DNA from: Basidiobolus meristosporus CBS 931.73
Lineage: Eukaryota; Fungi; Basidiobolomycota
DNA length: 64,000 bases
Direction: 5' to 3'
Assembly: GCA_002104905.1 (NCBI GenBank)
Contig: MCFE01000056.1
Coordinates: 124,001 to 188,000, forward strand
Below, one piece after another: positions 2,701 through 63,951 of this stretch. The position numbers and the translations under genes are program-made. Numbering within the stretch: position 1 is the stretch's first letter; the number at the start of each line of letters is the position of its first letter. The notes under the pieces were generated by a model. That model saw nothing but the letters and a program-made list of their open reading frames with translations. It was not told where the DNA came from and ran no database searches.

Positions 2701-3159
2701 TATATCTGATGTGTCCCAGTCTACTTTTATAACAAGACTGCACTGACATATATTTCAAACTGGGAGGGGCCTAGGACATAAACAATGTGTCAGAAATAGT
2801 GGCTGAAACACCTTCCTGATAGGGCAAGTATTCTAATCAGATTTGAGCTGTCAAAATATTTGACTCTTTGGTATTTGCAGCAGCTTAATATAAGTGCAAC
2901 AACTCTGAACTAATCATTGCCAGTATCTGCCTCATATGCTGCTCTAGCTTTGCCTTTTGCTGTCAGATCTATGATCTTATGGTTATCCCCCTGCTGTCCT
3001 GTGCTACAAGTCTCAATATAAGAGATGGAGAGGAATAGTGGGCTTAGCAAGTATTGTATTCACTGAGACTTGAGCCACTTTTTATGGAGATTCCAGCCAC
3101 TCCTTGTATACTTTATGCTGAATCAATTGTTAACTGATAGTATTTCCTAATGTGGTTGT

Positions 3160-9060: not shown

Positions 9061-9799
9061 AGCATTCAATTATTTTATCTTGTTAATGGGACAATTATGT
9101 TTGTGTTTGGTTTGTAAACAGCTCATGTAGCCCCTTAAGTGGAATTAGCCTAAGACTTGTAGACTATGATTCTGGTGACTATGTAGAGTGTGTGTTTTGT
9201 GTAATTATAGCAGTGTCATTCAGCTATGTGGTCATATTAGCTATTGCAGCTGAGATCTCTCATAAATAGAAATCTCAAAAATGAAACTCATCAGATTACA
9301 TGCATGCATTCTACTGATATTCTCACATAAGCTTACCAGTATTCTGCTGGTGCTTTTCCTTCAAGCCTTTGGCTCCAATATCAGGGCCAATTGGTAGGAA
9401 ACTGAGTACCATAACTACCAACAATGCTTGTTGGTCTTGACTCTTCCTTGATATTATAGCTACAATTATGCCAAGTATTTATGGCCTGATATATTATGTG
9501 TTTACATTTCAAGAATCTTAGAGCTCATCTTATAATTTCATTGTCATCAACTGGCTTTCTCTTGTTTTTCTCTCAGGTAGGATGTTGAATATTTCCTTAG
9601 CTGATGGTACTATCAATATCTTTTTAGTCCCTATGAGAGTAATTTGGCTCCACAGGTAGATCCACTCTGGATCAGCCACCAGGATCTCACATAAGGGCCA
9701 TTAAAATGCCAGCAGCTTGTAATGACTTATGCATTTTACAATCTTGTGAGAGTATAGCAATGGTGTTATGCAGTATTCATAATTAAATACAGTATCAAA

Positions 9800-11290: not shown

Positions 11291-11297
11291 ATAAATG

Positions 11298-11990
11298 TAA
11301 TGCAGGTGTGCTTTGGAGTAGGTCCCCCAGATCTCACATATGTAGTTACAAATGTTATATAAGAGTTGTGAAGAAATGGAAGGCTTAGCTAGTATTGTAT
11401 TTACTAGAACTTGCACTAATCTTTGTTGAGATTCCAGCAGCCCCTTACATAGATTTTGCCAGATCAATTGCTGACTAATTGTATTTTCTGATGTAGGTTG
11501 TGGCTGATGGCCCATCTAATTGCATCATCATCACCCAACTAGATCTCACTTGATATACCCATATCTGTCTGACAAGGATCTGATGATCTGTCTGATGACT
11601 AATACTATGGATTTGATAGATATTACTGATGTACAGATAAGCTAATCATAAAACTACCTGCTTTGACTAAAAACTGATCTAACTTAAATATTCAAGCAGC
11701 TGATCTTAGCACTCTTGCCAAATAAAGCTGAAAGTGTTCTTCTGTATCTCTTTTATTGTGATACCAGTATCTTAAAGGTTCAGCATTGTCAGTAAGTCTT
11801 GCAGGCTTTGGTCTGTCTCTGTGAACTAAATCTTCTTGAATATTTCCTTGTTGGTCCATTAGCTGGTAAGTTACAAATGGACATTCTCTAATGATCTTGA
11901 AAGGTCCCATCCTTTGTGGCTCAAACTTCTTCCAAGTGTTGTTTCTCAGCAATACAAAGTTCCCCACTGTCAATGCTTCTGGTGACATAG
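11298..11990 (-). mobile_element. gypsy 3' end with LTR (third copy of the family)
   Basis: ORF 11692-11988 KKFEPQRMGPFKIIRECPFVTYQL... is homologous to 362-550. It is followed by an LTR homologous to 602-1043. Confidence 0.75.
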
Positions 11991-12049
11991 TCCCTATGAA
12001 AATTATTGTGATGATCCCATTAAAAGGCCATTACAGATTCTAAGTTTCA

Positions 12050-14250
12050 TGACTAAGAGGTATTGATTCCATAAGGACACTGCACAAAGAACATCTAAAA
12101 GTAATTGCACCACAGATATCATAAAAAACTTAGTCAAAATTTTTCCTCACAATAATACAAAAGTGGCTTCCAATTAGTTCTTTGCCAATTTTCTCACCAT
12201 CTGATCCCAGACCCTCTATCACCTCCTACATTTGTGTGAATTGATTGGTTATTGCCTCTTTTTCACACTCCTTACTACCTGACTCAACCATTTCTCCTAT
12301 TTTTTCTGCATACAAATTGATTTATTTCTGCTTAAACTTCAGTTGTACCTCAATTGTTAATTATATTGACCTATACAAGTACCTTTATCCTACACTAACA
12401 TTAAGCCTAGACCCACACTCAACAAGCAACTCCATTAAAATCCACTACTCAATAAGTATTTCTGCTGTTATGCTGTGTTTTAACAACTTTGACAGGAACC
12501 CTGCAGCTTTATGCCATTATTCATTCACTGGTTCCAATACGTCCTGGTCTTCAGCCAGCACTGCAAGGTCTAGCTCCTCATCTGCTAGTTGTTGCAATAA
12601 GTCCTTGCAATATTCAAGTGCATTTTCTTGAGCACTGCGCTGGGATAAGGGCTGCAACCTCCTGATATGCCTATTAATGTTCCAATATTCCACCAAAGGC
12701 ATTGTGATAACCTTCTGAGTTCTTGATATTGCTACTTAGTCTGTCAGTGGGATCTCCACTCTGTCAACAATGGAGGACATGGAGGCTGTGGTAGACATAT
12801 TGCCTCTCTCTGCAAACTCATCTACCTCACTGCAGTGTAGCTTAACTGGATGTGCCTCCAACTGTTGTGAAACAGCTATTTTCTTGCTGTTAATTCTTTA
12901 AGGCTATGATACAATTCAATCTGTTCAGGGCTCACAGCATTGATTGGCAAGAACTGCAGCTTTTTTTGTATGCTACCCTGTCTCTGGCTTGAGTACACTT
13001 TTTCCCCTTTATCTTTTCTTTCATCACTGCCAGGTCTTTCACTGCTACTTTGACTGAGTGCCTCTTGAGTAATACTGCACTTTTTCCTTGGTAAATGTTG
13101 TGCTGGTATATATGTGTCTGCCTACTTTTCTCTTATCAGCATTCTTCCAGCCACCTGATGCCTCTTTGATGCTTGTTTAGAGCTTTTGGTCCTGCTTGTA
13201 ACAGGCTCTTGAGGAAGCCAGTGGTTTTTAGCCATGGCACCCTTGTTCTTCTGCTGTTGACAGTTTCTGCTATTCTTGAGATACATTTTTAGCATATCAA
13301 TGCTGGCCCAGAATCTGTTTGCTTGTTTGAATCCAGGATAATGCTCATGGTGCAAGTCAAGCACATTCTGCTTGGCCTTGCATTCCTGACAGTCCCATGG
13401 TATGCTGGCCTTCAAGTGTTGGCATGCAGTACTTCTAACAGCCTCTTGCATATTAGCTCACACTTCATCATTGCACTCAAAGGCTTCACAGATATTCAAT
13501 GTCTTTTGACTTTTAGGCTTTGGTATAAATACTACATTTTCCCCCTCACATGCTATAATAGGTTTTCTGTGGGCCTTATCTTTGGGCATTGTTGTTGTGC
13601 TTCAATGACTGTATGGTGTTCCTCTGCTGTTACATTGGGAAATGGCCCAATTCTTGGCTGTGACATTTAGCTACTTGAGTTCCTTCTTGGCAACAAAGAT
13701 AATGTTTTCTCTACCTTGGATATTGATTGTTTTTACACCTTTCATCTGCTCATCTTGTTTCTGGACTATTTCCTGATTTCTCTGGGCCATTGAATCTATC
13801 CTATCAGCCACTGCACCTAATTGTCTCATTAATGCTTTGTAGGAGCTGACAACATGCTTGCTAATACAGGTGATGGTGATGTTATCACAGCCACTTGCTG
13901 GTCTTCAGCTGATGGTAGTGCTTTTGCTACATTGTCATCTGCCTCAGCAATATGGTCAGCTTGTGGCTCCACAGAAATTCCTAATAGCCTACTTGACTGT
14001 GAGCCTGAGGAGTCTGCATTATTCCCTTCAGTGGGCACACTGACCTTAGGGTCTTTTTTGGTTGTAGCCCCACTTGTTGCACTGAATGTCCAGGCAAGCT
14101 GTTGTCCAACCATTCTTCTGCTGCTGTCAGCAGTGGGGTGTGGTTGGGAACCAGACAACTTTGCTTTATTTTTTGGTGGCATATATATATATGGAAGTGA
14201 GTCAAACCCAAGGGGATATGGTGTTATAGATACATGTGTATATGGTTCCA
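12050..14250 (-). mobile_element. decayed repeat, unclassified (possibly non-LTR ORF1-like)
   Basis: CpG-depleted fragmented ORFs (13829-14182, 13122-13451, 12517-12702) with no diagnostic motif that I recognise. Confidence 0.3.
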
Positions 14251-14299
14251 GAACTTTATTTGTAATGCTTACTATGGTGGGTCATCATTGAATCTTACA

Positions 14300-15105
14300 T
14301 TTATGTAGGTGCAATGTCTCAAATACAAGACTGTTATAAATACTGGCCACTGATCTTATCAACTTGAATCTACCACCAATCTTATGGACCAGAGCAGAAC
14401 TCTGGTGGTAGTCTCACAGGTATCTGGGCCTAAATTGCTATCCAACCTGGTTAGCTACCTGTATTCATTGCTGGATAAGCTTTGTATGCTTTCCAGTGGG
14501 ATAGCAATAAATGGCCATCATGTAAAAGAGCCTATTATTATCTGCATTAGAGATACCCCAGCCATCAGCAAGATAGGTGGCTTTACTGGGCACAATGTAT
14601 GGTATTGCTGTCAAATGTGTGAGATTCAGGGGACTTACTCCACAACTCATGCACATTATTATTACCCAAACACCAACACTAAGAACATCATCTTTCTACT
14701 GAGAGGACATACAGAAGTCAGCATGCAATTACAGTAAAGTTGGCAAGCTATAAGCCATTGACCAGAATATGAGATTAAATGGAGACCAGAGATACTTAAG
14801 ATAGAGGGTATCTGTTGGAGCAAAAGCTTTCCACTGGGAGCAATGCATATGCTTTTCAGCAATATCCCTATACTGATTACCAAGTGTACAAGGGGCATTT
14901 CAAGCTAAATGAGCCCTTTGAGATACTGGAGAAACTTGAAAGAACTGGCAAGATATTAAAGAGTATCTGCCACCCTAAGTACTTCTCATGGGCTCCAATC
15001 AACATTCATATGCATATGCAGCAATACAAGTGTCAGGACTGGATGAACTGGATATTTATTTATTCAAGTGGCCTTCTAAAGCCATTTCTACCTGATGGAA
15101 AATAA
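14300..15105 (+). mobile_element. CACTA/EnSpm-like tnp2 transposase remnant
   Basis: ORF 14384-14737 contains DTPAISKIGGFTGHNVWYCCQMCEIQG, matching the DxPA..K..G..GH...C..C...G pattern of tnp2 transposases. Confidence 0.7.
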
Positions 15106-15109
15106 AACT

Positions 15110-16602
15110 TGGGACTAAGTCAAATCATCAATCAACCAAAAATCAATTGGATGCAGATGGGTCTTCAAGACAAAATACAAGGCTGATGGTACAATTGAAA
15201 GATACAAAGCAAGACTTGTGGCCAGACAATACTCTCAAGCAAAAGGACTTGACTATACTGAGACCTTTGCACTGGTAGCCAAGCTTTAATTCCATCAGAT
15301 TAATATTGGCTATTGCAGCCAAATATAAGTTTTTTATTCATCAAATGGATATAAAAACTGCATTTTTGAATGGAGAACTTGACAAGGACATGTATATGGA
15401 CCAGCCTGATGGGCTTGTTGACCAAGATAACCCTTGTTTGGTCTACAAGCTCAAAAAGTCACTATATGGTCTCAAACAATCACCAAGAGCCTGGAATTGC
15501 AAGATATATTCTTATTTGAAATCTCCAAGTTTCAAAAGGAGTAATGCTGACTATAGTATATACTGTTAGCCAGATAGAGCAAATCCAGTTATAATAGCTC
15601 TATATGTGGATGATCTTATTATAGCCACCAATACCTAGAAACATTGGAAGAGACTAAATCCAGCCTATACAAGGAGTTCAAGATGTCCGATCTAGGAGAA
15701 CTCAGCTACTACTTGGGGATTAAGTTCTCCATAGACAGAAGTACCCAGACTATTACCCTAAGCCAATCCAAGTATATTCACAATATATTAAAGAAGTACA
15801 AAATGGAAGACTGTAAACCAACAGCTACCCCAATGGAGACCAACCTTAACTTGGTCAAAACTCAACCAAATCAAGAGAGCTTGGTGCCATCTGAAAGCCC
15901 TGAATTTCCTTAGCAATCTATGATCGGTAGTCTGACTGTGTATATCATGCTTGGAACACGTCCAGATATCTCATATTCAGTAGGGAGTTGTCAGCCAACA
16001 TAATCAGAACTATGGATCTGATCATATTGCAGCAGTTAAGCGGATTTTTAGATACCTGAAAAGGAACTGCTGATATCTGCTTAAGATACACTTATAAGGA
16101 CTCAGAACAGGATCTTGTGGGATACTCTGATGCGGATTGGGACAGAATTTGGAAGACAGAAGATCCACCACAGATTACACCTTCTTTACTGTAAAGGAGC
16201 AATTTCATGGAATTCAAGAAAGCAACCAACTGTAGCACTTTCTACCACAGAGGCAGAGTATATGGCAGCCTGTGAAGCTACAAAAGAAGCAATGTGGCTA
16301 AGAAAGCTTTTTACAGATTTAGGCCTATGTCAAAAACATGCCTATTACTTTATTTCAAGATAATCAAGGATGTATACAATTAGGTAGAAATCCAACTTTC
16401 ATGCTAATACTAAGCACACTTAGATAAGATATTAGGCATCATTTCATATGTGAAGCTATAGAGAATAACTTAGTTAGCTTAGCTTACTGCCCTTCAGATG
16501 AAATGATTGCAGACATATTTACAAACCATTAGCTAGAGACAAGTATGAATATCTTACGTCAAAATTGGGACTAGTCAGTATGAGCATTTAGCGGAGTGGG
16601 AG
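15110..16602 (+). mobile_element. Ty1/copia RT-RNase H remnant
   Basis: Motifs [65 protein letters not shown] and YCPSDEMIADIFTKPL. Polypurine tract GCGGAGTGGGAG at 16591-16602. Confidence 0.92.
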
Positions 16603-17687
16603 TGTTGTAATAATTTGGAATTCCACCTAAATATTCACCTAACTTAGTCACTTAGATCATTATCTTCATATCCTAGAGAATACTGACCAAATTCCTTGTT
16701 GGGATTTGCTTGGAATATTTTCACCAAAATACCAGGTACCCAGAACATGAAAATTTTCAAAGTTGTCCAAACAGCCCTAAACTTTGCACACATGTTCTTG
16801 AGACCTTCCTTGGCCTATTCTATGTGCTTGTTATGCTAAGACTATGTAAAAGTATAAATACTACTTTTACATCAGATTTGTTCCACTGGATATAGTGCCA
16901 CACTGAGCCATGAGTGCCAAATGATACCGTAGTGTATCAGGGAGGCCAAGTGAGCCTATACTTGGCCACAGAGTGTGAAACATAGCTCTGCATCTTCATG
17001 CAGAGCAGCCCCTGTGTTTTACCCATTGTACTAGAGAGAATCCATTTTTTGACCTTTTTTTTGGATCAATGTTATGTAGGATGTGTAAGAGCACAAAAGG
17101 AATGAAAACATACATCTGGTACTCAATACCCATGGCACTCTGAATCTATCTCCTGTATCTTGTATCAAGTCACAAAAATGTATGGCACTATCTTGGTCCA
17201 CTGGTACTATCTGGCACTCTAAGTGCTTTATATGGGTTTTACTTTATGGCTGATATTTAAATATAGTGCCTGATAGTACCAGTGGACCAAGATAGTGCCA
17301 TATGTTTTTGTGACTTGATACAAGCAACAGGAGATAGATTCAGAGTGCCATGGGTATTGAGTACCAGATGCATGTCTTCATTCCTTCTGTGCTCTTACAC
17401 ATCCTGCACAGCACTGATCCAAAAAAAAGGTTAAAAAATGGATTTTCTCCAGCAAAATAGGTAAAACACAGGGGCTGCTTTGCATGAAGATGCAGAGCTA
17501 TGTTTCACACTCTGAGGCCAAGTTTAGGTCTGCAATGCCTTTCTAGCATGCAATGGCACTATTTGGTACTCATGGCTCAATGTGGCACTATCCAACAGAA
17601 CAAGTCTATTCAATAAATCATTAAGTGAAAACCACATAATCTACTTGTCCTCCCAATCACTTCCAATATCTCCAAGACTCTTACAAT
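16603..17687 (+). repeat. copia 3' LTR interrupted by a foldback element
   Basis: TGTTG start after the PPT. The two halves (16603-16872 and 17609-17687) join to match the intact solo LTR at 56856-57188. Confidence 0.85.
16873..17608. mobile_element. about 736 bp foldback/MITE-like palindromic insertion
   Basis: Two inverted arms of about 345 bp around an approximately 46 bp spacer (17219-17264). Termini CAGATTTGTTC...GAACAAGTCTA. Non-coding. Confidence 0.85.
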
Positions 17688-18777
17688 ACAAAAAGCATAA
17701 TCTCTTACACATTGAAACAATGATCTGTTACAACACAACTGTGTTTGGTAGCCAATGAATATGTTGTGTTTTGCTGAGGACAAGTAGACAAATGTCTTAG
17801 AAAATATTGCACCTGGATTACCCTCATTTCAGTTGGGGTCAGGGTCAGCACCCTGACAGCAGAGATATTTAAGGTTGGAAATTTAACTGAAAACTACCAG
17901 CAGAATACCAGTGGTATGCCAGTGAAGTACCAGTAGCAGTTTGTATGAAGTCCAAGCAGGATCTTTTTCAAAAGGTACATGATTTACACCAGCTCTGGTT
18001 CCCACCCTCCCATAACCTTTGGTGAAGCATTCTTACTGGAATTTTCTTGGCCATGAAACAGATGCACATCAACCACAAAACAACTTCGTAGGCTATTCAT
18101 TACCACTGAAAATAATGAGAATACTGAGCATTTTCGGATTCCTCATACTTGACCAAAAAGCCTGGATGGAGGTGTGTTGGCTGTTGCAGGTCTTAAGGAC
18201 CAGGCATATGATCGAAAATGGAGCATATCATCCAGGTTGGGATGATTCACAAAAGAGGGAACGGAAGGGATAGAGAAATATATGAAAGATATGTGCCCAG
18301 TTTAGGGTCACATAGACGCCCTAATATTGTTGGTACAATTCCAACCAGATACTCATGGGAACCAAGTCCAAATCGGCCTGATACATATGATTCATCGAGA
18401 GCAATGCTGATTACCAGCAACAGGCATAAATTCAATAAGCTAATAGGTTCAAAACACCAACTCCCTCCACCTCCACTCACTCAGCTCTTACGACCACTGG
18501 CTTCGAACCTCCCACCTACAATCTCTTCGAAACCATCCGAATTGTGCACAGTTGTGGCTATAAATGATAAGGAGGTTTTCAACCGAAGCGATTTCTAGAT
18601 AACACTGTAGAACGCAGTGCCTATTCTTACGGGCTGCGGATGATCCGAGATGATATATCGAGATTGGTGGAACATCGCGGACGATGATCCAAATAGGTCG
18701 ATGAGGCATATTTGCCATTGCCTGAGGGCCAATATATATATCTCCGGGATAAAGACCGGTGGAGCCATACGAAATTC

Positions 18778-48991: not shown

Positions 48992-49549
48992 CTTGAGATA
49001 GTGATTTGAAGGAGTAGCTGACCGAATGTATTTATAGGATAATGAGGGTAGACGCATGCAATAGCACACATTATCAGTTTTGTCGATTTGTATCGGTGAG
49101 CTGCACGGCACTAACATTGATGTGGGATCCCTTCTTATGAAGGAGTTGATTTATGCCAATACTTGCGTTTAACATGTGTTCAGATTCGAAGGATACGTCG
49201 AATAGGGTTACTACTATATCTCCAGATTTTGGTCCAACACGGTATTGGATTTTAAGTAGGTTCATAGAATTGCTAAAGAAGGGTAGTCTTCTACCCTGAG
49301 CTGGACTTTGAAGTGTTATGAAATCCAGGCCAGTTCCCGTCCTTCTGTTTGGTGTAACAAGGTCTGTCCTTTATTTTAGCGTAGGATCTACTTTTTATAC
49401 ATTTCTCGATCATTTGCATACAACTTGTCTTACTTTAGCCCATCAGTCTTTGATCATTTTTGATGATTTTTGGTGTTGACGCATCTCTATATGCGACAAC
49501 TTGCTGCCTGTTCTGGTCGGGATTCAGACTTTCATAACAGAAGAGTGAG

Positions 49550-49622
49550 GGGGCGTTGGCCTAATGGATAAGGCATCAGACTTCGGATCTGGGGATTGTG
49601 GGTTCGAGTCCCATGCGCCTCG
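49550..49622 (+). tRNA. tRNA-Arg(UCG), copy 2
   Basis: Identical 73-nt cloverleaf. Confidence 0.95.
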
Positions 49623-50284
49623 TATTTTGTGCTTCATCGTTAGATGTCTCGAACTAGAGCCATAATAGCATTTAGCTCTGCAAATATTTTCACAGTTTAG
49701 ACATTTAGCAACTGCTAAAGCAATTGCAACAAAATTATAGACATCACATACTGCTACTCTGTGCTCGTAGCAGGATGAGGCCAGAGGAACCCACCACTGG
49801 TTTTGGGCAATTTAATTGCAATCTCACCAGTAAATCCATTTTTCCGTTGTCGTTAACATACTTCTTCCTTTCCAGATTGTTCGAAGAGTAATAAAATCCT
49901 CGAAATGCCCTAGCCCATGCCGATGTGTCCGTACAAAGTAGAACCGGAGGATTTCTATACAGCACATCGGTGTTATGATTCGCATTTGATAGAGTAGCAT
50001 AGTGTTTTGATGTCTGCAGTTGTATTATATATGAAACTAGCAGTAATCATCATCAGTGTCCTTGAAATGCTCGTGCTCATGTCCTTTCATTTACTTCGTA
50101 TTAGCGTGACTATTAAAAACAAGTGAATTACCTAGTGAACAAGAAAAAATATAGCAGAGCACCTGCATTTGTAGGAAATATAATATATTCTCTGTTTAGG
50201 AAGTAATAATTCTTTGTGAAAGTACTGTTTATTAAGTTGTATAACGAGGTTAAGTCTTTGGTATCCAGAGGGTATCTTAAGTCT

Positions 50285-50665
50285 CTAATAGTCGTCGTAG
50301 TCATCACCATGGCCACGGCCACCACTATACTTCCTTCTTCCATGGCCATTGCCATCACCATCATAGTCATTATCGTAATCATTGCCATACTTCTTTCTTT
50401 TTCCGTGACCGTGGCCATCGTAGTCATCTCCATCATATCTCCTTCTTCCACGGCCATTACCATCGTAATCATCGTCGTAGTTGCCACCTCCACCGCCGCC
50501 ATATCTCCTTCCGTGACCATTGCCGTCATAATCATCGTCATAGTCACCGCCACCACCATGACCTACCCCCTTGTAGTCAGGATCGTAAGAGCGCTCAAGG
50601 ACTGAAGCATTGATGGCCAACGCAGCAGAGATGACAAGGAGAAGCTTTGCAATGGAGTATTTCAT
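50285..50665 (-). CDS. YD-repeat secreted protein, array copy 11
   Basis: Intact ORF. The upstream flank is nearly identical to that of copy 9. Confidence 0.85.
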   Translation of the reverse strand: MKYSIAKLLLVISAALAINASVLERSYDPDYKGVGHGGGGDYDDDYDGNGHGRRYGGGGGGNYDDDYDGNGRGRRRYDGDDYDGHGHGKRKKYGNDYDNDYDGDGNGHGRRKYSGGRGHGDDYDDY

Positions 50666-50971
50666 CTTGAGATGGTGATTTGAAGGCGTGAACGACTGGA
50701 TGCATTTATAGGATAATGAGAGTAGACGCATGTAGTAGCACACTTTATCAGTGTTGTTGATTTGTATCGGTGGACTGCACAGCGCTAACAGTGATGTGTG
50801 ATCTCATCTTATGAGGTAGTTGATTTATGCCAAAACTTGCGTTCAACATGTGATCGGATTTGATTGATATGTCAACTATGGTTACCACTATTTCCATGCT
50901 TAATGGCTTAATCACGTAGAATCGATCAAAGGAGATAGTGTTGTGCCCTGAGCTGAAGTTTGGAGAGTGAA

Positions 50972-51044
50972 GGGGCGTTGGCCTAATGGATAAGGCATCA
51001 GACTTCGGATCTGGGGATTGTGGGTTCGAGTCCCATGCGCCTCG
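50972..51044 (+). tRNA. tRNA-Arg(UCG), copy 3
   Basis: Identical 73-nt cloverleaf. Confidence 0.95.
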
Positions 51045-51281
51045 TTTTAGTATTTCAGCACCTCGATCCAGATTGGGTCAATCGCACTTTTTCTAACACT
51101 TCACCATGTTCGCCATTTCGGTGATTATCGGATGATTTGGATCAACTTCCAACATTTAAGCTGCCATTTTATGCTTTGCTAACGTTGCGTTGATAGCCTT
51201 GTAAATAGATAAACCTCTCAACATACCATGTGTAAATATCAGTTTATTGAGTATCTGGTATCAAAAAGGTATCTCAAGTCT

Positions 51282-51662
51282 CTAATAATCGTCATAACCA
51301 TCACCTCGGCCGCCGCCACCACGACCACCATACTTCTTTCTTCCATTACCATCGTAGTCATCATCGTAATCATTGTCATACTTCTTTCTCTTTCCGTGAC
51401 CGTGGCCATCGTAGTCATCGTCGTAGTCATTGCCGTCATATCTACTTCCTCTTCCGCGACCATTGCCATCGTAGTCGTCGTCATAGTCATCGCCGTACTT
51501 CTTTCTTCTTCCGTGACCGTGGCCATCATAGTCATCATCATAGTCACCGCCACCATGACCTACCCCCTTGTAGTCAGGATCGTAAGAGCGCTCAAGAACT
51601 GTAGCATTGATAGCTAGCGCAGCGGAGATGACAAGGAGAAGCTTTGCAATGGAGTATTTCAT
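51282..51662 (-). CDS. YD-repeat secreted protein, array copy 12
   Basis: Intact ORF from MKYSIAK. Confidence 0.85.
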   Translation of the reverse strand: MKYSIAKLLLVISAALAINATVLERSYDPDYKGVGHGGGDYDDDYDGHGHGRRKKYGDDYDDDYDGNGRGRGSRYDGNDYDDDYDGHGHGKRKKYDNDYDDDYDGNGRKKYGGRGGGGRGDGYDDY

Positions 51663-51984
51663 GCTGAGATAGTGATTTGAAGGAGGGCCGATCAGATTTA
51701 TATACAGGGTGGTGAGAGTAAGCATAAGCAGTAGCACAAGCAGTAGCATGCTTCATCAGTGTTGGCGATTTGTATTGATGATTTAAGCTGCACAGCACTA
51801 ACATTGATGTATGCTCCCATCTTGTGATAGAATCAACTTGTGTCAACATTTGCGTTCAACATGTGTTCGGATGTGATTGATATGCCAACTATGGCTACCG
51901 CTGTTTCCATACTTAATGGCTCAGCCATATAGAATTGATAAAAAGAGAGAGCAGTTTACCCTGAGCTACACATTTGAGAGTGAA

Positions 51985-52057
51985 GGGGCGTTGGCCTAAT
52001 GGATAAGGCATCAGACTTCGGATCTGGGGATTGTGGGTTCGAGTCCCATGCGCCTCG
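51985..52057 (+). tRNA. tRNA-Arg(UCG), copy 4
   Basis: Identical 73-nt cloverleaf. Confidence 0.95.
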
Positions 52058-52291
52058 TTTTTGTAATTTCAACTCCATAATCGAAATGGAGTCAGTAACA
52101 CTGTTTGAATTATTCGCCAAGGTCACCATTTCGAAGTAAATCAAACAATTTGGATATTTCAATTTCCAACTTGAAAGTTTTAGCGTTACATTTTGATACC
52201 CTTGTAGGTAGCCACAATTCTGAACATGTCATGTGTAAATGTTGGTTTATTGTGTATTTGGTATTTGGTACCAAGAAGGTATCTCAAGTCT

Positions 52292-52678
52292 CTAATAATC
52301 GTCATAACCATCACCTCGGCCGCCGCCGCCACCGCCGTACTTCTTTCTTCCATGACCATTACCATCATAATCGTCGTCATAATCATTGTCATACTTCTTT
52401 CTTCTTCCGTGACCATGACCATCGTAGTCATCGTCGTAGTCATCCCCGTCATATCTCCTTCTTCTTCCACGGCCATTACCATCATAATCATCATCGTAGT
52501 CGTTACCATACTTCTTTCTTCCTCCATGGCCATTACCGTCATAATCATCGTCATAGTCACCACCACCACCGTGACCTACCCCCTTGTAGTCAGGATCGTA
52601 AGAGCGCTCAAGGACTGAAGCATTGATAGCCAACGCAGCGGAGATGACAAGGAGAAGCTTTGCAACGGAGTATTTCAT
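52292..52678 (-). CDS. YD-repeat secreted protein, array copy 13
   Basis: Intact ORF from MKYSVAK. Confidence 0.85.
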   Translation of the reverse strand: MKYSVAKLLLVISAALAINASVLERSYDPDYKGVGHGGGGDYDDDYDGNGHGGRKKYGNDYDDDYDGNGRGRRRRYDGDDYDDDYDGHGHGRRKKYDNDYDDDYDGNGHGRKKYGGGGGGRGDGYDDY

Positions 52679-53667
52679 GTTGATATAATGATTGGAAATA
52701 ATCAGAAGATCAAGGCATTTATACATATTACAATGCAAGAATATGCAGAAGCACGCCCATCAGTGTTTGCTGATCACACGTACAGTGTTGAGGAGAGATG
52801 TCCGTAGCATTCATGGCTTTAATCTAGTGCGCATTTAGCAGTTTTATAATGCGATATGTGTTGTTGGTTAAGCACACTCAGTACCAAACTACCTGTGCTG
52901 ACAACTCAGCTTGTAAGCTGTACATCAATTAGATGCTTCCCAACTTGTGCTATACTTGCAGTCATGGCTCTTTCTGCAGGTGACTTGAGTTTGATATGTC
53001 CAGATGCATATTATGTTTTGAAATCAGATTTTCTTGAGTGCCAATGACACGCCTGTGGTAATGCTGTACGTAGGTTTTCTGGCCAACGAGAAGCAGTAGT
53101 CAGTCATATAGTATTGTGGCATATTTCTAAATGGAATTCTGAGTCAGTTTACTTCAGGCCACTACACTGTGCAATATTCCTAGCAACGGCCAGACATTTC
53201 TTTGTAGCATATCAACCAGCAACAGTAGTAGCAGTAGTAGTTAAAATCATCGTTGGTGAAGCGTTTCAGCAGATTGAAATAATAGGAAGCAAAGTATAAC
53301 GTGCTTTATGTTTGCTTGCTTAGACTCACGGTGAAATGCCACTCTCAATTTGCGAGATAAATACATTCAAGCACCTGAATACGGGGTAACCCAAGGAGAA
53401 TTTTAGTGGCGAAATTTGTCAGGTATTTAGTTCGGATATATTCGGATATATTGTATTAGGTAACCACTCCAAATAGATAATCCACAATTTCCTTTTATGA
53501 CCCACTGTTCTTCGCGGAGGTTACTAATGGGGAAATGTTTTATTGATATGAGGAACGTTCTCTAGTTGGAATGACAAGATATTTTATATGTTCTAGATGT
53601 ATGGCAAGCGTTTCTATTTAAATAGGCCTGTTAGCATTTTCTATCACTGGAAACGAATCTAAGCAAA

Positions 53668-55599
53668 ATGAGACATGTAATTATTGGAGGTGTAGCCGGA
53701 GGAGCAACAGCAGCCGCCCGATTGAGAAGAGTGGATGAGACGGCTGAGATCATTTTATTGGAGAAGGGTCCCTATATCTCTTACGCCAACTGTGGTTTGC
53801 CGTACTATATCGGCGGAGTCATTGCTAAACGCGAAAAACTGCTGCTGCAGACGCCAAAGTCGTTTGGTACGCGTTTCCGTATTGACGTCAGAATAGAGAG
53901 CAAAGTAATTGCCATCCATCCAGAGGATAAAAGCCTGACCATTCGTAGGGCAAATGGAGAAGAATACAAAGAAACTTACGACAAGCTGCTACTATCACCA
54001 GGTGCCAATCCCGTGAAGCCGCCATTGGAGGGTATCAATTCCGAAGGCATATTCACCCTGCGCAACGTAGAAGATACCGACCATATCAAAGCGTACATTG
54101 CTGAGAAACAGGTAAAGCGTGCCGTAGTAGTAGGTGCCGGTTTTATCGGGCTGGAGATGGCGGAGAACCTGCACCATGCCGGGGTGGCTGTTTCCGTAGT
54201 CGAAATGGGCAACCAGGTTATGGCTCCTATCGACTTCTCTATGGCAGCGTATATCCATCAACACTTGACACAAAAGGGCACATCTTTATATCTTGAAGAA
54301 GGTGTTACGCACTTCCAGCGTACAGACAGCGGCATTACTGTTTTCCTGAAAAGTGGCAGGACCATTCCTGCCGATATGGTATTACTCTCTATCGGCGTGC
54401 GTCCAGCAACAGCATTGGCGCAACAGGCCGGCTTGAAGTTGGGAGAGACGGGTGGCATCTGGGTAGATAAACACTTGGAAACCTCCCAAAAGGATATCTA
54501 TGCAGTGGGTGATGCTATTGAATATCCTCATCCGTTGACCGGGAAACCGTGGCTCAACTATCTTGCCAATCCGGCTAATCGCCAAGGTCGTATCGTAGCC
54601 GATAACATGGTATTTGGCAACACGGTTTCTTATGAAGGGGCTATCGGTACTTCTATCGCCAAAGTATTCGATATGACTGTGGCTTCTACAGGACTGGCAG
54701 CCAAGCGTTTGAAGCAGTTGGGAATGGAGTATCAGAGTTCAGTTACCCACTCCTCTTCCCATGCAGGCTATTATCCGGACGCTTTGCCCTTGACGCTGAA
54801 GCTAACCTTTCACCCTAAGACTGGTAAGCTTTACGGTGCGCAATGTGTGGGCTACGAAGGAGTGGACAAGCGTATCGACCAAATAGCTGGAGTCATCAAA
54901 CATGGCGGGACGGTATATGACCTGACGGAAACTGAGCACACCTATGCACCCCCTTTCTCATCTGCCAAAGATCCTATAGCCATTGGTGGATATGTTGCCT
55001 CCAATATAATCAGCGGGGCTATGCCGGCTATTTCCTGGCGCGAACTCGTTGATGAGAAAGACCAAGTGATGATGTTTGATACCCGTACTGCCGAAGAATA
55101 CTCATTTGGCTCCATTCCGGGGGCTGTCAATGTTCCCTTGAATGAATTGCGTGAGCACATTGCTGAAATCCCGATGGATAAACCAGTTGTTCTATTCTGT
55201 GCCATAGGACTGCGCGGCTATCTAGCTCAGCGCATCTTGATGGGACGCGGTTATCGCAATGTTCGCAACCTAATCGGCGGCTATAAAACTTATTCCACCA
55301 GCGTAGCTCCTATTGCAAAGCCTTCTACCGAGGTTCCTTCACCACAAGAGGCTGGTGAGGCGACAAAGATAAACGTATGCGGGTTACAGTGTCCCGGGCC
55401 TATCATGCAGGTAATAGAAGCGATGAACAGCATTGCGGTTGGCAAACGTGTTACAGTCACGGCAACTGATGCAGGTTTGGCTCGTGACGCCTCTGCCTGG
55501 TGCGACACTACAGGCAACAAATTGATATCAAAGCATGAAGAAAAAGGTCGCTACACAGTTGTTCTAGAAAAAGGAGAACCCGCCACTAAACAGAATTGA
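53668..55599 (+). CDS. bacterial-type CoA-disulfide/persulfide reductase fused to rhodanese and TusA(SirA) domains
   Basis: Motifs IIGGVAGG (FAD), SYANCGLPYY (redox Cys), VVGAGFIGLE (NAD(P)H), YAVGD and YAPPFSSAKDP. Rhodanese loop FCAIGLRG and TusA motif CGLQCPGP. Intronless 643 aa. Confidence 0.93.
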   Translation: MRHVIIGGVAGGATAAARLRRVDETAEIILLEKGPYISYANCGLPYYIGGVIAKREKLLLQTPKSFGTRFRIDVRIESKVIAIHPEDKSLTIRRANGEEYKETYDKLLLSPGANPVKPPLEGINSEGIFTLRNVEDTDHIKAYIAEKQVKRAVVVGAGFIGLEMAENLHHAGVAVSVVEMGNQVMAPIDFSMAAYIHQHLTQKGTSLYLEEGVTHFQRTDSGITVFLKSGRTIPADMVLLSIGVRPATALAQQAGLKLGETGGIWVDKHLETSQKDIYAVGDAIEYPHPLTGKPWLNYLANPANRQGRIVADNMVFGNTVSYEGAIGTSIAKVFDMTVASTGLAAKRLKQLGMEYQSSVTHSSSHAGYYPDALPLTLKLTFHPKTGKLYGAQCVGYEGVDKRIDQIAGVIKHGGTVYDLTETEHTYAPPFSSAKDPIAIGGYVASNIISGAMPAISWRELVDEKDQVMMFDTRTAEEYSFGSIPGAVNVPLNELREHIAEIPMDKPVVLFCAIGLRGYLAQRILMGRGYRNVRNLIGGYKTYSTSVAPIAKPSTEVPSPQEAGEATKINVCGLQCPGPIMQVIEAMNSIAVGKRVTVTATDAGLARDASAWCDTTGNKLISKHEEKGRYTVVLEKGEPATKQN

Positions 55600-56245
55600 A
55601 GCATTTTGCGTGGCTACAAAAATGCTCCACCTTCCTATAACATTAGTTTAGTTAGTTTCCCAATTTGGGATTATATAAAGTCATTTGCAATCATGCCATT
55701 CCATTCCATAAATGTATGAGGCTCTTGTGCTCACTAAATCCAGATCAATAATGCTCCCGATATTCTCAAAATAGTACATAATTGACCAATTCGTCTCTTG
55801 CTTCAAGATCTTGATATGGATTGAAAATGAATATGAATGCTAGCCAAAGAAGGCGATTGAAGGCAATACTTCAACTAATGTAATCCTCAATTGTTACAAA
55901 TACTTTCCTCGTACACAAATAGAACAGCTAATAGTACTAATTGATTGGATATTTGTCAGCCATTAGAAAATATCATACGATAAACTGGCTCTTTTTGTTA
56001 TGAAAGTCTTGCATATTGTAAGGCACGTGAAGTAAATGTAGGTTTTTTGATTTTCACATCATGAATATTGCATGTAAAGGGAGTTTTTAAACTTAAGTAA
56101 GCTCTGGCAAGACAACATGTAAAAATATTTATGAAGATCCCACAAATACATGTTGTAAGAGTTTTTGCGTTATTGGAAGTGATTAGAAGTACAAGTATAT
56201 CATGTGGTTATCACTTAATGATGGATTGAATGTAAAAGTTGTATT

Positions 56246-58960
56246 TGTTGCAAGAGTCTTGGCAATATTGGAAGTGATTGGCAGAACAAGTAGATTGTGT
56301 GGTTTTCACTTAATGATTTATTGAATGCAAAAGTAGTATTTATACTTTACATAGTCTTGGGATAATAAACACGTAGAATAGATTTAAGAAGGTCCCAAGA
56401 GCATGTGTGCAAAGTTAGGGGCTGTTTGGACAACTTATCCAATTTTCATGTTCTGGTACCTGATATGTGGGTGAAAATATTCCAAGTAGATCCCAACAAA
56501 AAATTTAGTCATTATTCCCTAAGATTTGTAGGTAATGATCAAAGTGACTAAGTTAGGTGAATATTTAAATGGAATTCCAAACTTTTACAACACTCCCACT
56601 CAACTAAATGCTCATATTGACTAGTCCTAATTTTGAACTAAGATATTCAAGTTTGTCTCTAGCTAATGGTTTGGTAAATAGGTCTGCAATCATTTCATCT
56701 GTAGGACAGTAAGCCAAGTTAGCTAAGCTAATCTCTACTGCTTCACATATGAAATGATGTTCAATATCAGTGTGCTTAGTTCTAGCATGAAAAGTTGGAT
56801 TTCTAGCTAATTGTATACTTGCTTGATTATCTTGAATTAAAGTAATAGACATTTTTGTTGTAAAGATTTGTAATTCCACCTAAATATTCACCTAACTTGG
56901 TCACTTAGATCATTACCTTCAAATCCTAGGGAATACTGACCAAACTCCTTGTCAGGATTTACTTAATATATTTACCCAGAACATGTAAATTCTCAAAGTT
57001 GTACAAACAACCCCAAACTTTGCATACATGCTCTTGAGACCTTCCATAACCTATTCTACATGCTTGTAACTCCAAGTTCATATAACAAGTATAAATACTA
57101 CTTTTACATTCAATAAATCATCAAGTGAAAACCTCATAATCTATTGTCCTCCCAAATCACATCTAATATCTTCAAGACTCTTGCAACAATTTTTGCTAGT
57201 AGAGCCAGATGTGCTCTATCTGGCTTATAGTAGATAGCATAGTCAGCAGTACTCCTTTGGAAACTCAAAGATTCCAAATAAATATTTATCTTGCAATTCC
57301 CAGCTCATGGTGATTGTTTGGGACCATATAGCAACATTCTAAGCTTGAAGACCAAATGGGAGTAATCCTGTTGAGCAAAGCCATCAGGCTGGTCTATATA
57401 CATGTTATCATCAGATTTCCATTCAAAAATGCAGTTTCTACATCCATTTGATGTATAAAAACTAATATTTGGCAGCAATAGCTAAAATACATCTGATGGA
57501 ATCAAACTTGGCTACTGGTGCAGAGGTCTCATTACAGTCACATGCTTTTGTTTGAGAGTATCCTTTGGCCACAAGTCTTGCTTTGTATCTTTCAATCTTA
57601 CCATTAGCCTTGTATTTTGTCCTGAAGACCCATCTGCATGAAATCAAATTTTGATTGATTGGTAATTTGACAAAGTCCCAAGTTTGATGTTCCATCAGTG
57701 CCTGATAATCCTTAGTTGTTGCAGATCTCCAAGACTTTGTCTAAGGGCTATTTAAGACCTCTTTTATAGTCTGGGGTGCATCAATATGGACAGAATAGGC
57801 ATAGGCTGGGTTTGTACCCTCATCAATATAGTAATCTGGGCCATTTCTGTTCCAAGTAGAATCTGATAGTCTGTAATACTGCAATGATCACACCAAGGAT
57901 ATTCCTGGGTGCTGAAACAGGTTGTACCACAGTTGCAGAGTCTTCTGAAGAGAAAAAGTCTTCATTCTCTTGCTCTGATTAAATCCTGACTGTTGGTGGA
58001 CTTGAATTTGGATTTTTGTTATCATTTGATGTCAATTTGTGGGAAAATCATGATTTTCATCAAGGAGCACATCCCTGGCATTGATCAGCTTCTTTGCTTT
58101 GGCAGTGTAGAGTATGTATGCTTTGCTCTCATTACAGTAGCCTAAAAATATGCATTTTGCACTTTGTGGCTCAAACTTTGACTGATTACCAGGCAGTTCC
58201 TTGGCAAATACTTAACACCCAAGCATTCTTAGATGTTCTGCACTTAGTCTGTAGTCATACCTTGCCACAAGTGGAGTAGAAGCATGTAGTATTCTGTTAT
58301 GACTCCTACTTTTAAGGAATACAGCTGTGGCAACTAATCTGACCTAATATTATAGGATAATTTTGATCATGGACCATATATCTTGCCATATCAATTTTTT
58401 TGGCTCTATTTGCAGCTTCTGCTACCCCATTTTGCTGTGGGGAGTATGGTACAGTAGTCTCTTGCTTTATCCCATAGGTTTTGCAGAAGTGGATCAAGAG
58501 CTTTAAGGAATATTTTCCATCATTGTCAGAGCATATTTTCTTGATTTTTTTACCAGTTTCTCTCTCCACCAAAGCTTTAAACTCCTTGGGCTTAGACAGA
58601 GCTACTTTCTTTCTCTCCATGAAGTAGACCTATGTGCATCTTCTATAATCTTCAATAAAAGTGATTAAATAATACATCCTGCACAAAGAAAAATTTTGCA
58701 TTGATCCACACAGATCTGAGTGAATTAGATCTAATTTCTTCTTAGTTTTGACTTGCTCAGAGCTCCTGAAAAATTGTATGGCTTGTTTGCCATATATGCA
58801 GGCTTCATAGTACTCCAGATTAGCTGGGGGATCAGTTTTTACTCTGGAAATTAGCTGATCATTGATCATTTTGTGCAATTATTCATAATTACTTTGTCAG
58901 ATTGCCTGTGCCAAAACATTGATGTTTCCTCATTTAAGTAACTCATAGTTGATTCCTGAA
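56246..58960 (-). mobile_element. decayed, internally deleted Ty1/copia element (same family as 15110-17687)
   Basis: GAG-pre-integrase/integrase (LDLIHSDLCG; TVPYSPQQNGVAE), RT ([10 protein letters not shown]) and RNase H end (HARTKHTDI; MIADLFTKPL). PPT at 56593-56602 and 3' LTR at 56246-56592. Confidence 0.9.
56856..57188 (+). repeat. copia solo LTR with 5-bp TSD
   Basis: TGTTG...CAACA termini flanked by ATTTT on both sides (56851-56855 and 57189-57193). Confidence 0.88.
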
Positions 58961-59039
58961 TGGATGGAATATAGTCAACTTGTATAGATTCTGATCTATG
59001 ATACCCAAGGCAATATGGGCACCATTTTGATCATGTTAG

Positions 59040-60770
59040 GGTTGAGGGGGGAGGAATGTCACCAAGTGGTGGAGTCTTTATTTATTTATGACAAGTATCC
59101 AAAGAAGCCAACTTAATCTGAAGTTATTCCTAGAAAGCTAGGTCTGAGAGTTGAGAAGCTGAGTGGTACTGTATTACCTAGTTAGCTAGGTCTGAGAGAG
59201 GTTTCCTGCAAAGTCAGGCCTGAGAAGTAAGAATCTTAGTATATCTGAGGTAAGTTGTACTGGTTTGTGGTAGCTGCATTGTGGCCAGAATGTCCAGTTG
59301 AGTGAGGGAACTGAGGGGAACTTCTGGGCAATCACCAGTCAAATTCACTAGGCAAATCTGACCAATTAGAGCTAGGGGGAAACAGTCACCAACAGGTAAA
59401 ATCTTTATTTCAGCTGGAACAAAGAAGACAGTGCTACTGTCATAGCTTTTATACAAGAGTGTCTAGCTGAGTGGAACTTGTAGGTAAGGTAACAAGGAGA
59501 GATGATAGCTCTCAGTGCTGAAGATACTGTTCAGTGGGAAGGGGGGTAGCAAGAGGGGCAAGAATGATTTGTGAACAACATGGATAAAAGTTAAGGGGGA
59601 TGATAATCACCAAAAGGTGAAATCTTAGGGTTAGGGGATCCTATGATAAATAATTTGGGATAGTGGGAGACAGTCACCAACAGACAAAATCTTTATTTCA
59701 TTGAAAGAAAGAAGCCAGTGCTACTGTTGAAGCTTTGATACAAGAGTGTGTAGCTGAGGGGAGTTTGTAGGTAAGTTAATAAGAAGTGGTGATAGTTCTT
59801 CAGTGCTCAAGACACTGTTCAGTGGAAGGGGGGAGCAAGAAGGGTGAGAATGATTTGTGAACAACATTAATGAGGAGAATATGATAACAATTAATATTTG
59901 TCATAAAGGGAGTGTGCTGCTTCAGATACTGCTGCCAAAGATCTGTCAAGTACTTCAGATAGGCCAGTTTGGGTTTTTCTGACTGCAGAATATAATGAGC
60001 AAACTTCTTGACTTCAGGATCTCCAAGTATAGTTCTCCAGCAGGAGCCAGGTGTAGCATGGTGTGTTCTCTTACAGGCATTGATTAGTTGGTTGCTGCAG
60101 TGGTGAATTCTGAGATATAATGTGGTTCTAAGGTAGAGAAGTCTAATCATATAGGGCATAAACCCAAAAGCACCAAGAATAGCATGTCTGTAGGGGCATA
60201 CAGGCAGACAAGGCACCAAGGAGGTAATACACCAGACTGCAAGCTTGTCAAGCTTAGTGCAGTTGCTAGCAGTAAGAGAGAGAAGTGGTAAGCCAAATTC
60301 CAGGACAGGAAAGACAAGCTGTTTGAGAAGAAGAAGGCAGTGGGAGCTGAAGTTGTAGGAGCAACAGCCAGTAGCTTGTGGAGAGCCTGTCATGCCAGGA
60401 TAATTCTCTTCTTCAGGTGTGCTCCAGAGCCTAGTCCAGTAGGAAGGAAAGGAAAGCCAAGATATGCAGCAGAAACCTGAGCAGGTAGAGTGCAGTTTTC
60501 TAAGTTGATGGGACTACTAAAAGGTACTGTCTTTGCAATGAAAAGCTGGAGATTATTCTTCTGCAAATGCTAGTGAATGGTCTGGGAGTCTTGTAGCTTG
60601 AACCAAAGCAGGTTTCTGTCAGCTGAATCAAAGGCTTTAGTAATATCAAACAGAACAGAGGGATACTTGCACTGGAGAGAGTGATCTTGGCTAAGTACGA
60701 CTGCATATTCCAAGGAGAGGCTAGGAACAAAGCCAAACTGTGCCGGGTGAAACTTACATCACTCAATAGT
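59040..60770 (-). mobile_element. non-LTR (LINE-like) retroelement 3' remnants
   Basis: ORF 59800-60393 LLKQLVFPVLEFGLPL resembles the post-RT L..P.LEY region of LINEs. CpG-depleted, with a duplicated 3' region. Confidence 0.5.
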
Positions 60771-62748: not shown

Positions 62749-63951
62749 TTAATACTTGTAGAAGCCGCCACTCCCGTGCCCTTCATATTCTCCACCACCT
62801 CCACCGTTGCCGCCATATCCACCGCTGCTGCCACCACTGCCGTTTCCACCATGTCCTCCGCTGCCACCACTGCCGTTTCCACCATGTCCTCCGCTGCCAC
62901 CACCGCCATTTCCACCATATCCTCCTCCGTTGCCGCCACCGTTTCCACCATATCCTCCACCACTGCCGCTGCCACCACCGCCATTTCCACCATATGCTCC
63001 TCCGCTGCCGCCACCGTTTCCACCATATCCTCCACCACTGCCGTTGCCACCACCGTATCCTCCGCTGCCACCACCGCCATTTCCACCATATGCTCCTCCG
63101 CTGCCGCCACCGTTTCCACCATATCCTCCACCACTGCCGTTGCCACCACCGTATCCTCCGCTGCCACCACCGCCATTTCCACCATATGCTCCTCCGCTGC
63201 CGCCACCGTTTCCACCATATCCTCCACCACTGCCGTTGCCACCACCGTATCCTCCGCTGCCACCACCGCCATTTCCACCATACGCTCCTCCGCTGCCGCC
63301 ACCGTTTCCACCATATCCTCCACCACTGCCGTTGCCACCACCGTATCCTCCGCTACCACCACCGCCATTTCCACCATATCCTCCTCCACTGCCGCCACCG
63401 TTTCCACCGTATCCTCCGCTGCCACCACCGCCATTTCCACCATGTCCTCCACTACCACCACCACCATTTCCACCATATCCTCTACCGCCGCCGTTTCCAC
63501 CATATTCTCCGCCGCTGCCGCCACCGTTTCCACCGTATCCTCCGCTACCACCACCACCGTTGCCACCATATCCTCCGCTTCCACCATATCCTCCTCCGCT
63601 GCCGCCACCGTTTCCACCATATCCTCCACCGCCGCCGCCACCGTTTCCACCGTATCCTCCGCTACCACTACCACCGTTGCCACCATATCCTCCGCTATCA
63701 CCACTACCGTTTCTACCATAACCTCCGCTACTGCCACCGCCGTTTCCACCATGTCCTCCGCCGCTGCCGCCACCGCTTCCACCGTATCCTCCGCTACCGC
63801 CACCACCGTTTCCTTCATAGCTATCACCGTGAGCTACACCACCACCTTCACCAGCGTAATCTTTGGTGTTGTATCCGCGCTCGAGAACAGCAGCACTCGC
63901 CATGGACAAGATTGAAGCTGCAAGAAGGAGTTTGACCGAAGAGATTTTCAT
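62749..63951 (-). CDS. secreted Gly-rich (GYGGNGGG) repeat protein
   Basis: Signal peptide MKISSVKLLLAASILSMASA followed by AVLERGY. About four near-perfect 96-nt internal repeats. Intronless. Confidence 0.85.
   Translation of the reverse strand: MKISSVKLLLAASILSMASAAVLERGYNTKDYAGEGGGVAHGDSYEGNGGGGSGGYGGSGGGSGGGHGGNGGGSSGGYGRNGSGDSGGYGGNGGSGSGGYGGNGGGGGGGYGGNGGGSGGGYGGSGGYGGNGGGGSGGYGGNGGGSGGEYGGNGGGRGYGGNGGGGSGGHGGNGGGGSGGYGGNGGGSGGGYGGNGGGGSGGYGGGNGSGGGYGGNGGGSGGAYGGNGGGGSGGYGGGNGSGGGYGGNGGGSGGAYGGNGGGGSGGYGGGNGSGGGYGGNGGGSGGAYGGNGGGGSGGYGGGNGSGGGYGGNGGGSGGAYGGNGGGGSGSGGGYGGNGGGNGGGYGGNGGGGSGGHGGNGSGGSGGHGGNGSGGSSGGYGGNGGGGGEYEGHGSGGFYKY

Follow-up and report, generated by a model that had tools for sequence, protein, structure and literature searches.

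Here we describe a gene of bacterial origin, integrated in a chromosome of the gut-associated fungus Basidiobolus meristosporus CBS 931.73 (Basidiobolomycota), that encodes a predicted fusion of a CoA-disulfide reductase (CoADR; CoA, coenzyme A) with rhodanese and TusA domains. The gene lies in a stretch of 64,000 nucleotides (contig MCFE01000056.1 of assembly GCA_002104905.1, positions 124,001 to 188,000 of the forward strand), termed the window throughout and numbered from its first letter. We regard as very probable an account in which a piece of a Bacteroides chromosome was transferred to the fungus in truncated form, the donor promoter was kept, the open reading frame (ORF) was maintained by selection, and the gene was later duplicated. 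The donor lineage, the integration, the truncation, the retention of the donor promoter and the selection on the ORF emerge from the present analysis; we infer the expression of the gene, the substrate of the enzyme and its benefit to the fungus.

The ORF is by far the longest of the window, begins with ATG, contains no intron, and matches Bacteroides at the DNA level across positions 53665-55583. An earlier interpretation made from the letters alone (the sequence-only reading) had proposed it as an intact bacterial CoADR-rhodanese-TusA gene with all catalytic motifs, and as a candidate for horizontal gene transfer (HGT). The gene and its domains are as follows:

53668-55599, + strand: acquired gene for a CoADR-rhodanese-TusA protein of 643 amino acids, intronless (ORF, Pfam, homology to Bacteroides)
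53671-54963, + strand: FAD/NAD(P)H disulfide-reductase module, Pyr_redox_2 and Pyr_redox_dim (Pfam, alignment to the structure 3icr)
55045-55296, + strand: rhodanese domain, residues 460-543 (Pfam E 1e-16, alignment)
55366-55572, + strand: complete TusA domain, residues 567-635 (Pfam profile positions 2-70 of 70, E 5e-16)
55584-55599, + strand: last codons and stop without a Bacteroides match, marking a 3' break in the linker between TusA and DsrE (nucleotide and protein alignment)

Pfam matches within the reductase module comprise Pyr_redox_2 at residues 2-285 (E 2e-61), Pyr_redox (E 6e-16) and Pyr_redox_dim at residues 331-432. An FAD-binding Rossmann motif (GGVAGG, residues 7-12) lies at the N-terminus, and a second motif, GAGFIG (residues 156-161), would bind NAD(P)H. 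All three catalytic cysteines can be read straight from the sequence. The single redox cysteine, Cys42 (codon 53791-53793), stands in an S-x-A-N-C-G (NCG) motif that lines up with the active-site cysteine motif of 3icr, and this cysteine is invariant in the fungal and Bacteroides sequences; the rhodanese active-site Cys511 (codon 55198-55200) occupies a loop, F-C-A-I-G-L-R-G, that lines up with the corresponding loop of 3icr; and Cys575 of TusA (codon 55390-55392) stands in C-P-G-P, the Cys-Pro-x-Pro motif. The domain assignment of the sequence-only reading is thus upheld by Pfam and by the residues themselves.

The nearest relatives of the protein occur in Bacteroides species, with 83-85% amino acid identity, in keeping with the resemblance to proteins of Bacteroidales gut anaerobes that the sequence-only reading had proposed. 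To place the gene we used two maximum likelihood trees, a quick tree of 79 sequences and a careful tree of 52 (support given as ultrafast bootstrap / SH-like approximate likelihood ratio test). Four fungal sequences form one clade (100/99) in both, nested four nodes deep in the Bacteroidaceae (91/78, 90/95, 91/96 and 100/100), with a group of B. sp. GD17, B. muris, B. fluxus and B. heparinolyticus as closest neighbours; grouping with Bacteroidaceae as against other Bacteroidales has support of 100/100. Nesting in a bacterial clade, which had been predicted, is therefore what the trees recover, with one result weighing against its finest level: a position of the fungal sequences just beyond the 41 Bacteroidaceae sequences sampled was not rejected by the approximately unbiased (AU) test (p 0.139), so that nesting within the crown genus, as judged from these sequences, is likely and not proven.

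Synteny provides a second line of evidence on the donor. In Bacteroides the genes stand in the order HtrA, sigma-70, hypothetical, Peptidase_C11, reductase, MarR, Fkp, and among loci compared with 3-kb flanks the arrangement running from sigma-70 to the reductase occurs only in L001-L033 and L040, representing Bacteroides and a group of close relatives. The metagenomic locus L085 (positions 4001-6886; protein P0002), a Bacteroides homologue, has an internal duplication of about 100 residues that looks like an assembly artefact, and on its contig the gene neighbourhood of the donor type is cleanly displayed. Scraps of that neighbourhood persist beside the ortholog of the gene in B. ranarum (locus L081), collinear with the Bacteroides gene order and separated by large deletions:

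L081 2590-2651: 3' end of the Bacteroides sigma-70 gene (89%, E 4e-19)
L081 2649-2754: 3' end of the Bacteroides sigma-70 gene (85%, E 7e-29)
L081 2942-2982: 3' end of the Bacteroides C11 peptidase gene (78%)
L081 3041-3080: Bacteroides promoter block (78%)

Upstream of the gene in the window, nothing significant was found for remnants of the sigma-70 or C11 genes apart from the promoter block treated below. Trees and synteny together point to the Bacteroidaceae as the donor family, and the direction of transfer is from bacterium to fungus.

While the reading frame is open, the gene is not intact in the sense first proposed. Leaving aside the Basidiobolus cluster, the best 120 database matches are four-domain proteins of Bacteroides type, about 811-821 amino acids long (81-85% identity), in which, frameshifted or cut copies aside, a C-terminal DsrE/DrsE_2 domain forms an extra fourth domain. 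Pfam does not find this domain in the fungal ORF, and no DsrE remnant was found downstream of the gene in the window or in loci L081, L082 and L083. In alignment the fungal protein ends in the linker just past TusA, and its rhodanese-TusA linker is 18 residues shorter; what is missing amounts to the DsrE/DrsE_2 domain (about 170 residues) and those 18 residues. Because the ORF is open and yet the fourth domain is gone, we read it as a 3'-truncated derivative of the Bacteroides four-domain protein. In B. ranarum the ORF runs on for another six donor-like codons (C-P-S...) and then stops at a corresponding point, with an equivalent Asn-stop. Five proteins of 659-667 amino acids lacking DsrE (P0073, P0074, P0091, P0102 and P0106) were considered as further fungal orthologs and rejected; all are bacterial, resemble B. 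stercoris, and carry a frameshift or a cut near their ends.

A close known counterpart is BF638R_0572, the pyridine nucleotide-disulfide oxidoreductase of the B. fragilis BF638R_0572-bmoR operon and a member of the same four-domain family as the closest matches, with the first three domains in the same order. Its genomic neighbourhood (sigma-70, hypothetical, C11 peptidase, reductase, MarR) agrees with the remnants in B. ranarum. BF638R_0572 has DsrE/DrsE_2 and the additional 18 linker residues, both lacking in the fungal gene; it adjoins bmoR, whereas the fungal gene has no bmoR neighbour and the arms of its operator are mutated; and the fungal gene, unlike BF638R_0572, resides in a eukaryotic chromosome and in several copies. 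Since bmoR sits past the 3' break point in the Bacteroides gene order, the repressor gene was not retained with the fungal gene.

Two short blocks upstream of the ORF can be aligned with B. ranarum:

53611-53654, + strand: retained donor promoter/operator block, 44 nucleotides (homology to B. ranarum and, via it, to Bacteroides)
53447-53498, + strand: upstream block of 52 nucleotides in common with B. ranarum (L081 2853-2905, 69% identity)

The first is homologous to positions -77 to -33 of the B. ranarum gene (z score 8.6), and that B. ranarum block itself shows homology to positions -110 to -54 of Bacteroides (z scores of 10-15 against many species). It holds a decayed TTTCC..GGAAA inverted repeat (TTTCT at 53638-53642, GGAAA at 53649-53653), and each fungus has a mutation in one of the two arms. 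A promoter block with TTTCC inverted repeats also lies upstream of BF638R_0572, and in B. fragilis the regulator BmoR binds the TTTCC inverted repeats of this promoter (PMC6158253). On this chain of homology, the block represents a decayed Bacteroides promoter/BmoR operator. The second block is collinear with the first and has a z score of 7.0, a level reached in 0 of 300 dinucleotide shuffles; no match to it could be traced in any sampled Bacteroides sequence.

These relationships change the meaning of features that had been taken as fungal. The sequence-only reading had drawn attention to the TATA-like element TATTTAAATA, which does sit exactly at 53615-53624 as claimed and falls inside the block homologous to the Bacteroides promoter/operator. 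Likewise, the absence of a Shine-Dalgarno sequence and the A-rich start context are real, and the Bacteroides homologues themselves have no Shine-Dalgarno sequence and an A-rich leader, so that both are inherited donor traits and not signs of domestication. The block with the TATA-like element is conserved in both fungal species, and other flanking DNA has diverged. A tentative idea, which we hold to be possible and on balance doubtful, is that the fungus reused the AT-rich donor promoter/operator of Bacteroides as its core promoter and built no new one. Thanks to an A-rich Bacteroidetes leader without Shine-Dalgarno sequence, and to the loss of bmoR with the 3' break, the gene could have been ready for expression as soon as it arrived.

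The sequence-only reading placed the gene between an array of fungal secreted-protein genes and decayed copia sequence, and both neighbours proved to be as described:

52292-52738, - strand: upstream host neighbour, final unit in a tandem array encoding small secreted proteins
56604-57695, - strand: downstream host neighbour, CpG-free remains of a copia-type retrotransposon (RVT_2 at 57462-57695)
49540-58889, no strand assigned: segmental duplication carrying the gene, 96% identical to contig MCFE01001009

A nuclear tRNA-Arg(TCG) gene lies within the upstream array at 51985-52057. Together with that at 50972-51044 it falls inside one of two successive array units, and each unit seems to bring its own tRNA gene. 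Adjoining the copia fragment, positions 56151-57189 hold a 95-nucleotide tandem pair and nested inverted repeats (arms at about 56196-56592 and 56856-57189) in a foldback-like structure where many read joints accumulate.

That the gene might be absent from the fungal genome altogether, as a product of chimeric assembly or bacterial contamination, is suggested by an intronless ORF of bacterial type, and was the circumstance under which the HGT reading would have failed. Contigs of sequencing runs X1 and X2 bridge the upstream junction (53400-53803) and the downstream junction (54787-56168), and word depth in these runs is 417-520 in the gene as against 460-520 in unique flanks; neither a chimeric join nor coverage at a bacterial level is seen, with the caveat, which favours the contamination explanation, that X1 and X2 may be the source data of the assembly and hence not independent of it. 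Other evidence does not share this caveat. The fungal flanks are common to paralogous loci: the gene copies on MCFE01000487 and MCFE01001009 show 99.0-99.7% identity and lie in common fungal flanks of 5-9 kb at about 96% identity (window positions 51976-56856 are 96% identical to MCFE01000487), and array units recur at paralogous loci. An assembly of B. ranarum from a separate project contains the ortholog (83% nucleotide and 89% amino acid identity) beside pseudogenised donor scraps and adjoining a fungal repeat that also occurs in the window. The truncated three-domain architecture is found in no intact close bacterial relative among the best 120 matches, the five short matches examined being the frameshifted or cut bacterial copies already mentioned, and the closest bacterial DNA is just 78% identical to the gene. 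The gene is truly integrated in the fungal chromosome, contamination and chimerism being effectively excluded; we would give that explanation almost no weight.

Several observations bear on the copies and their surroundings. At an identity of at least 90%, the protein of the window clusters with four others, three from B. meristosporus CBS 931.73 and one from B. ranarum. One further copy (L084, contig MCFE01001205, positions 6001-7985) lies at a contig end and differs from the window gene by four one-base indels and zero substitutions; it probably represents a second assembly, with errors, of one and the same locus, and its public gene model, of 537 amino acids, is "spliced" around the indels. 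The repeat common to both species (window 58011-58885, L081 316-1189) has 67% identity over 883 nucleotides and lies a few kb from the acquired gene in each, on opposite sides. Runs X4-X6, which bear the same species label and come from another study, contain next to nothing of the locus at a likeness of at least 90%, a result silent on any more diverged copy.

Between B. meristosporus and B. ranarum the ratio of nonsynonymous to synonymous substitutions (dN/dS) is 0.09 (dN 0.0625, dS 0.68), the comparison with a sister-species ortholog by which the sequence-only reading had proposed to judge the gene; it is 0.14-0.31 among the paralogues and 0.02-0.05 among Bacteroides species. Between paralogues, the flanks have diverged two to five times more than the gene. 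The low dN/dS and the lesser divergence of the gene than of its flanks mark the ORF as under purifying selection in the fungus, and it has remained so while every co-transferred neighbour decayed. We also consider it likely that the gene is expressed. Run X3, dated 2013 and belonging to the study of the genome runs, with contigs totalling 27 M letters, covers the gene body at 53672-55414 with at least 99.6% identity and leaves the intergenic DNA on either side uncovered, the pattern expected from a transcriptome. Counting against this hint, the record of X3 states 'DNA?' and not RNA, so that its RNA status is a guess; RNA-seq of strain CBS 931.73 exists.

It might be supposed instead that the gene, though integrated, is dead or neutral, a recent insertion with no role in the fungus that has not yet decayed. 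Its repeat-rich surroundings, the four indels of the L084 copy, and the lack of a confirmed RNA run would all be compatible with such a state. A dN/dS of 0.09 across a dS of 0.68 is, however, impossible without long-term constraint; the neighbouring donor genes have all decayed, while the ORF is open in both species; the gene is more conserved than its flanks among paralogues; and indels with zero substitutions at a contig end look like assembly errors. We therefore judge a neutral insertion to be very improbable. Relatedness to Bacteroides, the well-supported fungal clade, the bridged junctions and purifying selection in two species together sustain the original proposal of HGT.

For the course of the transfer, we propose that a piece of a Bacteroides (Bacteroidaceae) chromosome of at least 4.2 kb would have entered an ancestor of the clades of B. 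meristosporus and B. ranarum, running from inside the primary sigma-70 gene via the hypothetical and C11 peptidase genes to the linker past TusA. The minimum size, of about 4.2 kb on the scale of GD17, follows from the scraps of sigma-70 and C11 genes in B. ranarum, which imply an incoming piece broken before DsrE and bmoR. The 3' break would have removed both the DsrE domain and the downstream gene for the MarR-type repressor BmoR; the co-transferred neighbour genes would then have decayed by deletion, leaving the reductase ORF and some 45 nucleotides of AT-rich promoter/operator; and B. meristosporus would later have copied the gene plus its fungal flanks by segmental duplication.

Whether this happened once or twice deserves particular attention. 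Basidiobolus is split into two major clades (bioRxiv 10.1101/2025.03.31.646025), and we favour, with high confidence, a single transfer before that split. Weighing against it, no homology was found when the sequences downstream of the gene were compared between the two fungi, the sigma-70 scraps were not found in B. meristosporus, and an unsampled lineage of Bacteroides from reptile or amphibian guts could have donated twice. If B. meristosporus and B. ranarum had each received the gene independently from one such lineage, the shared fungal stem in the tree would be donor history; consistent with this, only the gene and about 220 nucleotides upstream align between the species, sigma-70 remnants occur in B. 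ranarum alone, and these remnants retain 85-90% identity to present-day Bacteroides despite a dS of 0.68 for the fungal gene. Several features speak for one event instead. Both ORFs break off within one and the same short linker and finish on an equivalent Asn-stop; the 52-nucleotide upstream block is common to both, with collinear spacing and without a Bacteroides counterpart; the fungal clade, besides its support of 100/99, has a stem of 0.098; and an essential sigma-factor gene with an internal deletion of 159 nucleotides cannot be the donor's own state. Two independent transfers are on this evidence unlikely, and a single, ancient acquisition is the better description.

The family assignment of the product is unambiguous: by its sequence it belongs with the CoADR-RHD / CoA-persulfide (polysulfide) reductases, a subfamily of the class-I pyridine nucleotide-disulfide oxidoreductases known from bacterial enzymes whose structures have been solved. 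The protein matches the CoADR-RHD of B. anthracis (3icr; E 3e-174), the CoA-persulfide reductase of Enterococcus faecalis (8a56; E 4e-152) and Npsr of Shewanella loihica (3nta; E 7e-158), with the catalytic cysteine aligned. It can be aligned with these enzymes across residues 3-545, and both the NCG redox cysteine and the rhodanese cysteine are conserved; the three enzymes stop after the rhodanese domain, whereas the fungal protein additionally has the TusA sulfur-carrier domain. Likeness to them predicts the same chemistry, proceeding from NAD(P)H through FAD and a Cys-S-S-CoA centre to a persulfide, and we infer that the protein acts as a CoA-persulfide/disulfide reductase dependent on NAD(P)H. 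Most probably it is an FAD enzyme of the cytosol, a location expected because there is no N-terminal extension before the Rossmann fold.

Two points count against this functional assignment. The score against TIGR03385, the NCBIfam equivalog for CoA-disulfide reductase, is 482.7 bits, under the cut-off of 578.8, and the remaining NCBIfam CoADR equivalogs likewise score under their cut-offs, so that the protein is not filed as a CoADR of the Staphylococcus type; such a score would fit the rhodanese-bearing subfamily rather than that type. Further, the main thiol of fungi is glutathione and not CoA. In the proposed mechanism, NAD(P)H would reduce FAD, which in turn would reduce the Cys42-S-S-CoA centre; the thiol of bound CoA would then attack the sulfur of a persulfide or polysulfide carried on Cys511 of the rhodanese domain, with Cys575 of TusA as a further sulfur carrier. 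The substrates may be CoA persulfide, polysulfide or CoA disulfide, and the benefit would lie in keeping thiols and reactive sulfur in balance within a sulfide-rich gut. In B. fragilis, the MarR-type regulator BmoR, encoded next to the ortholog BF638R_0572, represses it, and cells that have lost BF638R_0572 are sensitive to diamide (PMC6158253).

Base composition contributes little to these conclusions. The sequence-only reading had remarked that the gene keeps its CpG dinucleotides while nearby transposable elements have lost theirs; the observation holds (observed/expected ratio 0.88 in the gene, 0.01 in transposon DNA at 56200-59000), and only shows that the gene behaves like neighbouring host genes, the adjacent array having a ratio of 0.84. 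As neither CpG content nor GC, overall or at third codon positions, sets the gene apart from the genes of the host or from its Bacteroides homologues, composition is uninformative as to origin. In the transposon-rich parts of the window, at 1-18000 and 56200-60000, CpG is nearly absent (ratio 0.00-0.03) and genes keep about 0.85, which suggests CpG-targeted mutation of repeats. Elsewhere, positions 62795-63813 hold a long imperfect repeat with a period of 33 nucleotides (also 96 and 129), C-rich on the + strand, overlapping ORFs of 376-400 amino acids on both strands.

Bacterial gene gain by Basidiobolus, like the enzyme family itself, is already known, and the event as such is no surprise. 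Tabima et al. 2020 (PMC7466969) reported 806 candidates of bacterial origin in the same strain, CBS 931.73, surrounded by fungal genes, mostly intronless and of host-like composition, with Bacteroidetes among the donors and 'Oxidation-reduction' as their top gene ontology term. The terms rhodanese, disulfide and sulfur are absent from the main text of that paper, and the gene is not discussed there by name; nor does that text report a donor at the level of Bacteroidaceae, a domain truncation, a retained promoter/operator or fossil neighbour genes in B. ranarum (PMC7466969). To this the present work adds that the donor promoter/operator was retained, that neighbour genes survive as fossils in B. 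ranarum, that the repressor was lost with the 3' break, and that the "eukaryotic-looking" start context, corrected here, is a donor trait.

What is unusual here is the legibility of the transfer: the donor family can be named, the insert has a minimum size and both of its ends are delimited, neighbour genes are visibly decaying around one preserved ORF, and a donor promoter/operator is recognisable upstream of a eukaryotic gene. The locus thereby makes testable how a bacterial gene becomes transcribed and translated in a fungus, whether dropping DsrE and the repressor alters the action of the enzyme, and whether a CoA-persulfide reductase aids a glutathione-using eukaryote against swings of sulfide and oxygen in the reptile or amphibian gut. 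If reuse of donor promoters should prove general, it could help to explain the establishment of Bacteroidetes genes in gut fungi.

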